This document shows, piece by piece, positions 16,836 through 19,532 of a stretch of 64,000 nucleotides of DNA. This DNA is from Obrimoposthia wandeli. Taxonomy: Eukaryota. The notes under the pieces were generated by a model. That model saw only the letters and a list, made by a program, of their open reading frames with translations, ran no database searches and was not told where the DNA came from. Made by a program: the position numbers and the translations under genes. The stretch covers positions 496,001-560,000 of the forward strand of contig CDROCS010002834.1 of the NCBI GenBank assembly GCA_977020255.1, written 5' to 3'. Numbering within the stretch: position 1 is the stretch's first letter; every line of letters starts with the position of its first letter.

Positions 16836-17678
16836 TTATTGGTGGTTCGACTTTCCTAATTTCGCATCAACAAGGGCGATTAAACATCCACTGATCAAAC
16901 CAAATAAATGCGCCATGTTCGCTATCGACATGCCCATCGGCTCAGCAAATCCAATCACCAGCCATGCCAGCATAAAACCGACATACGCTTTTGGCATAGT
17001 AAGCCCCCGTTTAGGTGCCAACCAGCCCATCCACCAGATGTAGCCCATTAACGCGTAAACAACCCCGGATAAACCACCAAAATTAGGACCATGAAGCCAA
17101 AATTGCGCAAATCCTGATATCAATGCAGATATTAAAAAGACTTGAACCAGTTTTACGCTACCACTATGCCGTTCTAATTGCCCCCCGAGAATCCACCACC
17201 ATAAGCAATTAAAAATAATGTGTAAGGCAGAAAAGTGAATCAAAGCGTGTGAAAAAAATCGCCACACTTGCCATTGGTCACCATCCATAAACGGGAAATG
17301 AAATAGATCAAAAATCGGTTGTTGCAGACCGAAGAACCACAATACATAAATAGCGATAACCACCACCATAACCGATAAACTAAACGGTCCAGCCTGTGAT
17401 TTAACCATCCCAATTAAACTCGGGCTTCGATAATTGAATTTTGCCGTACGGCTTTCGGCCACATCCCAAGATGCTGCTTGATACTTAGATTCGTGCGGAT
17501 TACTCAAAAAAGCGTTGAGTTCAGCTTCTGCTTCAACCTGATGTTGAATATCAACTAACCAGATGGCAAAGACACCTTCTGGTTCAGATGCTAAAGACAA
17601 TGTAATACCACGCGACGCCATATAGTCGATAAACGCTTGCGCCTGACGAGGATTATGGAATCCAGCTAATCGTTGCAT
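16836..17678 (-). CDS. glpG: Rhomboid intramembrane serine protease
   Basis: WRFFSHALIHFS, GGLSG catalytic Ser, ANMAHLFG catalytic His. Confidence 0.97.
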   Translation of the reverse strand: MQRLAGFHNPRQAQAFIDYMASRGITLSLASEPEGVFAIWLVDIQHQVEAEAELNAFLSNPHESKYQAASWDVAESRTAKFNYRSPSLIGMVKSQAGPFSLSVMVVVIAIYVLWFFGLQQPIFDLFHFPFMDGDQWQVWRFFSHALIHFSALHIIFNCLWWWILGGQLERHSGSVKLVQVFLISALISGFAQFWLHGPNFGGLSGVVYALMGYIWWMGWLAPKRGLTMPKAYVGFMLAWLVIGFAEPMGMSIANMAHLFGLISGCLIALVDAKLGKSNHQ

Positions 17679-17718: not shown

Positions 17719-18051
17719 TTAACCGATCTGCTGAATAATGGGTAAAGCCTGACGACGCCAAGCTTCAAAGCCACCATCCAAACTATACACCGCTTCAAAC
17801 CCTTGGTTAATCAAATATTGTGCTGCACCTTGGCTGCTAATGCCGTGATAACACATCACAATCACAGGTTGTTCAAAATCAACCTGATTCATTAGCTCAA
17901 CCATGGTGTCATTCGTCAGGTGATAAGCATTTTCAGGATGTGCTAACCCAAATGATTGAGGGTCACGAATATCCACTAATACTGCCTGTGATTCTTCTTG
18001 CTGTAATAAGCTATATGCTTGATCAACTGAAATATGTTCAAACTGTTCCAT
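17719..18051 (-). CDS. glpE: Thiosulfate sulfurtransferase (rhodanese)
   Basis: [25 protein letters not shown]. Confidence 0.96.
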
Positions 18052-18082
18052 TGGTTGCCTCTTGGTCCTAATAATAGATATC

Positions 18083-18671
18083 GATCTTTCCCGCTATCAA
18101 AGTGTGATGATCGTCCGATTTAGGATCCCATCGATAACATGGCGAAGGAAATATCGTTGTCACCTATTGTACCTTACTCAGTTACTCACAACCTCGTACA
18201 GAATGTAGGGGCTTATCCACACTGTGAAAGTAACCGCTAGTGTAGGTACCATGGGGCTTTGAAAAAGAGAAATGATACCTTGCAACCAAAAAGAGCAAAA
18301 AACAACCAGCTGTGGAAAAGCCTGTGGATTGCGTTGATAATGTGTTTTCAAATAATAGGATCCACTATATGTAGTGAGGATCCGATCATAAGCTGTGCAT
18401 AACTCACTCTGTAGTCCACAAGGATATTCACAAACGTGCGTTATATCTCAAAAACATCCCCAAAGATATCCCAACAAAAAAGGCACCATCTATCGCTATA
18501 ATTTGATGATACTTCAAGGTGAAAGCAACAGCAGCTCGGTAAATTCAACACGTTAGAAAAAGTTACACACCGAATTTTTGCCACAAAAAAACCGACCATG
18601 ATAAGTCGGTTTTTATTTTACTGCCTGTGGATAGCCTTATAACGATCGAGATCATCGTAATAAACTAGATC
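18083..18671. promoter_or_regulatory. Cluster of DnaA boxes and GATC sites (replication-control-like locus)
   Basis: Perfect TTWTNCACA boxes at 18213-18221 (+), 18311-18319 (-), 18394-18402 (-); 1-mismatch boxes at 18182, 18424, 18577, 18626; nine GATC sites. Confidence 0.7.
18585..18615. terminator. Intrinsic terminator after rpoH
   Basis: AAAAAAACCGAC-N8-GTCGGTTTTT. Confidence 0.8.
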
Positions 18672-19532
18672 CTAGTAAAAATCGCCTACTGCTTCTTTCA
18701 GCTTCTTCATGGCATTTTTTTCAAGCTGGCGAACCCTTTCGGCAGATATGCCGTAGTGATTAGCTAAATCTTGTAAGGTCGTCTTTTCATCATCTAACCA
18801 ACGAGATCGCACAATATGCTGACTGCGATCATCTAATCCTGCTAATGCATTGGATAGACGGTTGTTAGTATGTTTTTCCCAGTTATTTTCTTCGTAGCTT
18901 AAAGCAACATCAGAGGCTTTATCTTCAAGGAAATAGACAGGAGCAGTGTAGCCTGCATCACGATCATCATCTTCATTTGGTAATTCAAATGCGGGATCTT
19001 GTGCGGCTAAACGTGATTCCATCTCGCGTACTTCAGATGGATTAACACCAAGTTGTTCTGCAACCATTTCAACTTCTGCGTTGTTAAACCAACCCAGACG
19101 CTTTTTTGACTTACGCAGATTAAAGAATAGTTTACGCTGCGCTTTGGTTGTCGCAACTTTCACGATACGCCAATTGCGTAAAACATATTCATGTATTTCA
19201 GCTTTAATCCAGTGTACCGCGAAAGACACCAAGCGAACCCCAACTTCAGGGTTGAAGCGTTTTACCGCTTTCATCAAGCCGATGTTGCCTTCCTGTATTA
19301 GGTCGGCTATTGGTAAGCCATAACCGGAATAGCCACGAGCAACGTGTACAACAAAGCGCATATGTGACATTACCAAACCTTTCGCAGCTTCAATATCGCC
19401 ATCATAATGCAGACGTTCAGCTAACTCTTTTTCTTGCTCTGCGGTAAGCATTGGGTGTCTATTGACTGTCTGGATATAACTATCCAAGCTACCAGCAGAA
19501 ATTAGAGCCATTGAAGACATCTCTTTTGCCAT
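18672..19532 (-). CDS. rpoH: RNA polymerase sigma-32 factor
   Basis: [14 protein letters not shown], RpoH box [19 protein letters not shown]; downstream of ftsX. Confidence 0.99.

Follow-up and report, generated by a model that had tools for sequence, protein, structure and literature searches.

A conserved core of DnaA boxes, Dam sites and a predicted NrdR operator between rpoH and glpE in Vibrionaceae

The spacer between rpoH and glpE in a 64-kb stretch of DNA (contig CDROCS010002834.1, positions 496,001 to 560,000, of the Obrimoposthia wandeli assembly GCA_977020255.1; referred to here as the window) contains a core in which DnaA boxes and Dam methylation sites (GATC) surround a predicted operator for the repressor NrdR. 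On balance, we favor the interpretation that this spacer is a promoter control region specific to the Vibrionaceae and under the predicted control of DnaA, NrdR and Dam/SeqA. The core is best filed as a DnaA/NrdR control region of the nrdAB type that is particular to this family. A first-pass annotation of the window had instead proposed a replication-control locus resembling a DnaA-reactivating sequence (DARS) or datA. That proposal was not upheld, as the DARS triad is absent, the canonical loci lie elsewhere, and the palindrome it had singled out corresponds to the NrdR operator. Its fallback, a DnaA-regulated promoter, is closer to the evidence.

The abundance of both kinds of site was confirmed by counting. 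Three perfect DnaA boxes (TTWTNCACA) are present in both orientations (18213-18221, plus strand; 18311-18319 and 18394-18402, minus strand), together with five one-mismatch boxes (at 18182, 18258, 18424, 18577 and 18626; at least four had been reported) and nine GATC sites between 18083 and 18671. The 64-kb window as a whole holds 11 perfect boxes, versus 9.5 expected from shuffled sequence. With an expectation of about 0.11 perfect boxes per 620 bp, three have a Poisson probability of 2e-4, and the rpoH-glpE spacer is the only stretch of that length in the window to contain them. It is also the only place with nine GATC sites (window mean 2.5 per 620 bp; P = 1e-3). The near-palindrome GGATCCACTATATGTAGTGAGGATCC with its flanking GATC sites was found as described, at 18358-18383. 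Chance alone would yield roughly one 600-bp stretch with three perfect boxes per several-Mb genome, and the decisive evidence is therefore conservation.

Conservation of the boxes and GATC sites in orthologous regions upstream of glpE, a check suggested in the first-pass annotation, was observed across the Vibrionaceae. The rpoH-glpE arrangement is syntenic at 67 loci in this family, with a spacer of 320-620 bp that in each case carries 1-4 perfect DnaA boxes and 4-12 GATC sites. Outside the core the spacer is mostly unalignable between genera, while the core itself is sharply conserved: in an alignment of 46 species 35 columns are invariant, including the CACA of three DnaA boxes and both bracketing GATC sites. 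An nhmmer profile of the core matched 70 of 70 loci and, as a sequence-only model, matched strongly just once in each of 120 of the 121 Vibrionaceae genomes sampled. A search of 144 genomes from other families of the same order returned nothing better than E = 0.002, and the core was absent from the regions upstream of glpE in Aeromonadaceae. In agreement with the earlier remark that no such element had been described here, no paper linking rpoH-glpE, VC0150 or VC0151 to one was found.

Read from rpoH toward glpE, the core consists of DnaA box 1, GATC, NrdR box 1, GATC, a 16-bp linker, NrdR box 2, DnaA box 2b and DnaA box 3 (Table 1). Its spacing begins with TTAYNCACA, about 9 nt, GATC, 3-4 nt, a 14-bp palindrome and GATC; the second GATC is followed by 13 nt, ACAC(T/A)TTATCAACGCAATYCACA, 3 nt and TTWTCCACA. 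The DnaA boxes form outward-facing pairs, and in most Vibrio the outer boxes are 178 bp apart. The rpoH-side distance of the core varies (135-322 bp). In V. algivorus the core, at 44.2 kb on the chromosome, lies 44 kb from a verified oriC (13-mers and three perfect R boxes at chromosome position 130-390); the remaining complete chromosomes carry it 45-160 kb from a record end, a distance in record coordinates rather than from located origins.

The core is also kept in reduced genomes of 1.9-2.1 Mb. In one of them (L114), rpoH is not adjacent and the core is still found 144 bp upstream of glpE; in the other two (L115 and L116), glpE has been lost and the core persists between rpoH and glpG. In L115 and L116 the flanking DnaA boxes TTGTCCACA and TTTTCCACA remain, and both GATC sites have decayed. 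As a separate observation, glpG in L114 is apparently split by a frameshift.

The palindrome is predicted to be an NrdR box (NrdR box 1, hereafter box 1). It matches 13 of the 16 positions of ACACWATATATWGTGT, reportedly the consensus given by Rodionov and Gelfand in 2005, and all six core positions. NrdR sites consist of two 16-bp boxes 15-16 bp apart, with C4, A6, A8, T9, T11 and G13 conserved (PMC13584703). All 46 of 46 species keep exactly these six residues unchanged and differ at positions 2, 7, 10 and 12. Across species box 1 scores 10-14/16 with a core of 6/6, a range that overlaps the values for the genuine boxes at nrdA in V. cholerae, V. algivorus and P. profundum (13-14/16, core 6/6). 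Box 1 is the only 16-mer in the window that has all six core positions and at least 12 matches, where about 0.25 sites of its quality are expected by chance per 64 kb. In the V. cholerae genome, the rpoH-glpE site is the only one that matches the stringent pattern CNCWAYATNTWGTG on both strands. Sites for parS, SlmA, matS, LexA, CRP and crtS were considered for the palindrome and rejected, with no tool-based scan, on the basis of sequence mismatch or known location.

The second NrdR box is degenerate. In most species it reads ACAC(T/A)TTATCAACGCA, with C4, T6, A8 and T9 and with G at position 14 rather than 13. In vitro, E. coli NrdR tolerates the A6T change and C-N9-G spacing in one box (PMC13584703). 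In the reduced genomes L115 and L116, box 2 is C(C/T)ACTTTATATTGA, with five of the six core positions and a 15-bp linker. Two Vibrio species carry a further box: V. algivorus has a perfect 16/16 match, ACACTATATATAGTGT (L106:2199-2214), 74 bp to the rpoH side of box 1, and V. rumoiensis (L047) has a 15/16 match at what by eye is the aligned place. Other Vibrio species are without an extra box.

A natural point of comparison is the nrdAB promoter. The strong NrdR box that precedes nrdA has, in three genera, a perfect TTATCCACA located exactly 78 bp farther upstream, which indicates that DnaA/NrdR co-control exists in these genomes. The nrdA start codon is 123 bp downstream of the strong box in all three, and V. 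cholerae has a further NrdR-like box with a 6/6 core 324 bp upstream (L110:388). The rpoH-glpE core would represent a second instance of this design, at a locus unrelated to RNR (ribonucleotide reductase). Both place at least one DnaA box beside paired 16-bp NrdR boxes (predicted in the case of the core) that are 15-16 bp apart and unequal in strength, one of them being degenerate; the six core positions are shared, and GATC occurs nearby. They differ in that the core is not upstream of an RNR gene and has only a candidate target transcript, carries DnaA boxes on both sides in opposed arrays, and has two invariant Dam sites bracketing box 1; outside the boxes there is no sequence similarity between the two. 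The neighbors of the predicted operator are rpoH and glpE-glpG, and the RNR genes are on other contigs.

The two GATC sites that bracket box 1 are 20 bp apart and invariant in the 46 species, as expected of a Dam/SeqA target, for which at least two conserved sites spaced roughly one to three helical turns from each other are characteristic. Genes for NrdR, Dam and SeqA were present in all genomes checked (for nrdR: P. profundum, V. cholerae and the three reduced genomes). Between the candidate glpE -10 element and the start codon (18052-18165) there are three further GATC sites, at 18083, 18109 and 18124, of which those in GGGATCC and CGGACGATCATCAC contexts are kept among Photobacterium species.

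These features suggest a model in which a tandem NrdR operator, made up of a canonical and a degenerate box, bracketed by Dam sites and flanked by DnaA boxes, would apply the logic of nrdAB at a non-RNR locus. A promoter in or beside the core would be repressed by NrdR loaded with dATP and ATP, and DnaA on the flanking boxes would tune its activity. After passage of the replication fork the two GATC sites would be hemimethylated and SeqA may bind, which would open a cell-cycle window. For the controlled transcript there are two candidates: the glpE-glpG operon, the sole coding target, and a divergent non-coding RNA that would start in the operator and run to the two-way rpoH terminator.

Promoter-like sequences were found for both. 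On the glpE side, TACAAT, preceded at a distance of about 40 bp (by eye) by a DnaA box in reverse orientation, is a plausible glpE promoter; in V. cholerae a similarly placed GGTGGATAA lies 39 bp before TACAAT (spacing by eye). One metatranscriptome contig ends at 18154, which is weak evidence for such a promoter. The strongest promoter-like signal within 260 bp, with both strands considered, is on the opposite strand, a divergent extended -10 element that passes in 73% of 67 species. Relative to it, box 1 would occupy approximately +12 to +27 and DnaA boxes 2b and 3 would cover the -35 zone, a geometry that would be ideal for repression. As candidates for what this strand might encode, a small protein was rejected on the lack of a conserved open reading frame (ORF), and a structured small RNA was rejected as, apart from the rpoH terminator, RNAalifold found nothing but trivial GATC pairings. 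Rfam searches of the window and four orthologous loci gave only a sub-threshold, terminator-like match to STnc370 and noise.

Several observations weigh against a promoter control region. The operator lies over 100 bp upstream of the candidate glpE -10 element, which is far for simple occlusion, and no conserved ORF or RNA fold was found downstream of the divergent promoter. Four metatranscriptomes gave flat, unstranded contigs with coverage of about 3-5x over genes and spacer alike, where carry-over of DNA is possible. We know of no link between glpE or glpG and the metabolism of deoxynucleoside triphosphates (dNTPs). Binding might be weak, as box 2 has a core score of 3/6 in most species and lacks the G13 that is critical in vitro. 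Neither glpE nor glpG is among the members of the published NrdR regulon for Proteobacteria, which comprises RNR genes, yfaE, trxA, topA and a few hypotheticals. The Dam sites appear to be dispensable, as three reduced genomes have retained dam and seqA but neither of the core GATC sites. Finally, the constant 178-bp spacing of the outward-facing DnaA-box pairs in Vibrio would also suit a nucleoprotein complex with no role in transcription.

The spacer was also compared with the known DnaA-binding loci DARS, datA and oriC. DARS elements promote the release of ADP from ADP-DnaA. A DARS core consists of box I, 5 bp, an opposed box II, 3 bp and box III (PMC8682772). A scanner for this triad (boxes II and III both facing box I, with starts at 0, +14 and +26) detected both E. 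coli DARS1 and DARS2, the regions upstream of uvrB in V. cholerae and V. algivorus, and the rppH-mutH spacers of the Photobacterium-like contig C122, P. profundum and V. cholerae. It found no triad in the 64-kb window and one among the 67 orthologous spacers. In P. profundum (L121), no DARS1-type triad was present in the 1.5 kb upstream of uvrB. V. cholerae DARS2 has already been aligned by the Katayama laboratory. Alignment with E. coli DARS1, DARS2 and datA by blastn, as the first-pass annotation had recommended, yielded nothing beyond DnaA-box words and one 13-mer. Like DARS, the core is non-coding and groups DnaA boxes of both orientations, and its same-direction box pairs with a 3-bp gap resemble DARS boxes II-III (the V. 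penaeicida match). It differs in that no box I faces box II at 5 bp, in that orthologues of DARS occur at rppH-mutH and uvrB, and in being rich in GATC. Nor did the claim hold that DARS and datA are characterized by Dam sites, since the E. coli DARS2, DARS1 and datA spacers, of about 600 bp each, contain 2, 1 and 2 GATC sites, respectively. The regions marked by GATC together with DnaA boxes are oriC and the dnaA promoter.

E. coli datA, a locus of IHF-dependent hydrolysis of DnaA-ATP, has DnaA boxes 2, 7 and 3 and an intervening IHF site, and lies beside queG and the glyVXY tRNA genes. In four Vibrionaceae, DnaA boxes form a dense cluster in the spacer adjoining the 3′ end of queG, with a head-to-head pair, up to five perfect boxes and few GATC sites. 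Because adjacency to queG is the position of datA in E. coli, this cluster is probably the Vibrionaceae counterpart of datA. The core is like datA in being an early-replicated cluster of DnaA boxes spaced about 80-100 bp apart, and unlike it in being GATC-rich and in having an NrdR operator, with the datA-like cluster located elsewhere, by queG. An IHF site (WATCAANNNNTTR) was not seen in the core by eye, a reading made with no scanning tool; TATCAACGCAAT was considered and rejected, as by eye it misses the TTR part of the consensus. With respect to oriC, the judgment that the locus is unlikely to be an origin was borne out, as there was no profile similarity to the V. algivorus oriC. Like oriC and the dnaA promoter, the core combines DnaA boxes with clustered, conserved GATC sites and has opposed box arrays; unlike oriC, it has no AT-rich 13-mer unwinding element and no gidA or mioC neighbor.

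Could the core still act in replication control as datA or DARS do, or as a DnaA sink near the origin? It would then titrate DnaA or change the nucleotide state of DnaA shortly after initiation, and SeqA and NrdR would gate access to it. The core would suit such a role in several respects: it offers at least three high-affinity and several weak boxes with a strictly conserved outer spacing in most Vibrio, its opposed arrays recall the DnaA-oligomerization regions of origins, it lies close to the V. algivorus oriC (and perhaps to others, as far as record coordinates indicate), and it is kept in reduced genomes even without glpE. We consider this role unlikely. Every DARS or datA feature tested was wanting: the triad is absent, canonical DARS1, DARS2 and datA-like clusters occur elsewhere, no IHF consensus is evident between the boxes (by eye only), and the core is GATC-rich. 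Outside V. algivorus the distance to oriC rests on record coordinates. The central, best-conserved element is the operator of a transcriptional repressor, which a replication-control locus leaves unexplained. An NrdR operator at the palindrome favors regulation of transcription, as at nrdAB, over remodeling of the nucleotide state of DnaA.

Another alternative is that the plus strand carries a small RNA gene, extending from approximately 18350 to the two-way terminator near 18620 and repressed by NrdR and DnaA. It draws on the divergent extended -10 element, which is the strongest local promoter signal and overlaps box 2, on a classic repressor geometry like that of box 0 and box 1 of E. coli nrdAB, on DnaA boxes 2b and 3 in the -35 zone, and on the terminator U-run on the plus strand. 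An AT-rich NrdR half-site is inherently similar to a -10 element, however, and the TG of the extended element is displaced, as read by eye, in Splendidus-type sequences. The RNA would range in length from 135 to 322 nt, with no conserved ORF, no structure other than the terminator and no Rfam match, and an RNA contig covering 18254-18440 extends past the proposed start. We regard such a gene as possible but doubtful. Lastly, the sites could be neutral, functionless words resembling DnaA boxes in an AT-rich spacer, in line with the roughly one three-box stretch expected per genome and the 0.25 NrdR-like 16-mers expected per 64 kb. This notion is refuted by conservation, namely the invariant columns amid unalignable flanks, the single copy in nearly every genome and the retention at 1.9-2.1 Mb, and we give it virtually no credence. 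A Vibrionaceae promoter control region predicted to be bound by DnaA and NrdR is the interpretation we prefer.

The first-pass annotation had also pointed to a likeness between a 30-mer in the spacer and E. coli DARS2. The likeness to the E. coli rppH-mutH spacer is real, with an exact 13-nt word and 25 of 30 ungapped matches, and in 1.7 Mb of examined sequence this mutH-proximal site was the only match of at least 22/30. It is located about 430 bp from the DARS2 core, and the 30-mer is absent from Photobacterium's own DARS2 locus. In the rpoH-glpE spacer, the 30-mer is part of a roughly 100-bp insert that is confined to the P. profundum/indicum clade and lies outside the conserved core. A mobile repeat was considered for this insert and rejected, as it is single-copy and occurs in 2 of 13 Photobacterium genomes, including P. 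profundum.

Both the ORFs and a terminator hairpin (18587-18614) bore out the gene context described in the first-pass annotation. Along the minus strand come ftsY-ftsE-ftsX-rpoH, the 620-bp spacer, glpE, glpG, an MFS transporter and a DeoR/GlpR-type regulator. GlpE and RpoH encoded in the window are 97-99% identical to their counterparts in Photobacterium indicum and P. profundum. The assembly that holds the window is mixed, with 1.35 Gb, many bacterial genomes, and at least 24 mnmG and 6 mutH copies. The Photobacterium mutH/DARS2 locus is apparently on a separate contig of this assembly (C122, assigned to the same Photobacterium by similarity to P. profundum), and mnmG was not among the matches on the contig of the window.

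Table 1. Positions of sites and genes in the window and of the loci used for comparison
Feature	Position	Strand	Basis or remarks
Conserved core	18300-18412	-	46-species alignment, nhmmer; ~100 bp
DnaA box 1, TTATGCACA	18394-18402	-	CACA invariant; TTATCCACA in most Photobacterium, TTAC[C/A]CACA in Vibrio
GATC, rpoH side of NrdR box 1	18379-18382		Invariant in 46-species alignment
Extra GATC	18384-18387		Clade-specific; site count
NrdR box 1 (predicted), TCACTACATATAGTGG (minus strand)	18362-18377		Palindrome center
GATC abutting NrdR box 1, glpE side	18359-18362		Invariant; 20 bp from the other invariant GATC
NrdR box 2 (predicted), degenerate, ACACATTATCAACGCA (minus strand)	18330-18345		16-bp linker from NrdR box 1
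DnaA box 2b, CAATCCACA	18323-18331	-	2 mismatches; 3 bp before DnaA box 3, same orientation; CACA invariant
DnaA box 3, TTTTCCACA	18311-18319	-	TTATCCACA in most Vibrio
DnaA box 4, TTATCCACA	18213-18221	+	Opposite orientation; ~41 bp upstream of candidate glpE -10
Candidate glpE -10, TACAAT	18166-18171	-	Inferred; TACAAT / TATACT / TACACT conserved before glpE
Candidate extended -10, TGATAATGT, divergent promoter	18335-18343	+	Inferred; overlaps NrdR box 2
30-mer resembling E. coli rppH-mutH spacer	18556-18585	+	25/30 versus E. coli L082:2097-2126, 65 bp before mutH
rpoH-glpE spacer with whole cluster	18052-18671		ORFs; tblastn synteny in 67 Vibrionaceae loci
rpoH terminator hairpin	18587-18614		U-run on both strands; covariation in Vibrio alignment
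rpoH	18672-19532	-	ORF list, tblastn
glpE (rhodanese)	17719-18051	-	ORF list
glpG (rhomboid)	16836-17678	-	Downstream of glpE
DnaA box / strong NrdR box upstream of nrdA	L110:634/712, L111:633/711, L112:638/716	Oriented with nrdA	78-bp spacing
DARS1-type triad upstream of uvrB	L119:3883 (V. cholerae), L120:1060 (V. algivorus)		Scanner
queG-side DnaA-box clusters	L107:570-905 (P. profundum), L108:430-715 (V. cholerae), L109:1150-1450 (Parasalinivibrio), L104:2015-2053 (V. algivorus)

The location of the core relative to its neighbors is consistent with a link to glpE and glpG, as box 1 and the glpE start codon are separated by 174-177 bp in most of the listed Vibrio species and by 188-307 bp in three. 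To our knowledge, NrdR is regarded as almost specific for RNR genes, and co-control by DnaA and NrdR is known only at nrdAB. A site of the DnaA/NrdR type that is fixed family-wide at a non-RNR locus, apparently near the origin of chromosome 1, and kept in genomes of 1.9-2.1 Mb would depart from this picture. A practical consequence is that a misannotation is averted, as the true DARS1, DARS2 and datA-like loci of the Vibrionaceae are elsewhere. A more far-reaching idea, which we think quite unlikely, is that the core is a checkpoint site near the chromosome 1 origin, unique to the two-chromosome Vibrionaceae, that reads the dNTP pool, the status of DnaA and passage of the fork. If true, such a checkpoint would couple initiation or elongation to precursor supply independently of RNR, by way of a regulatory RNA or a gated DnaA complex. 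More generally, the core may imply an unrecognized output of the circuit that senses replication and dNTPs in Vibrio, Photobacterium and Aliivibrio, genera that include pathogens and model symbionts.

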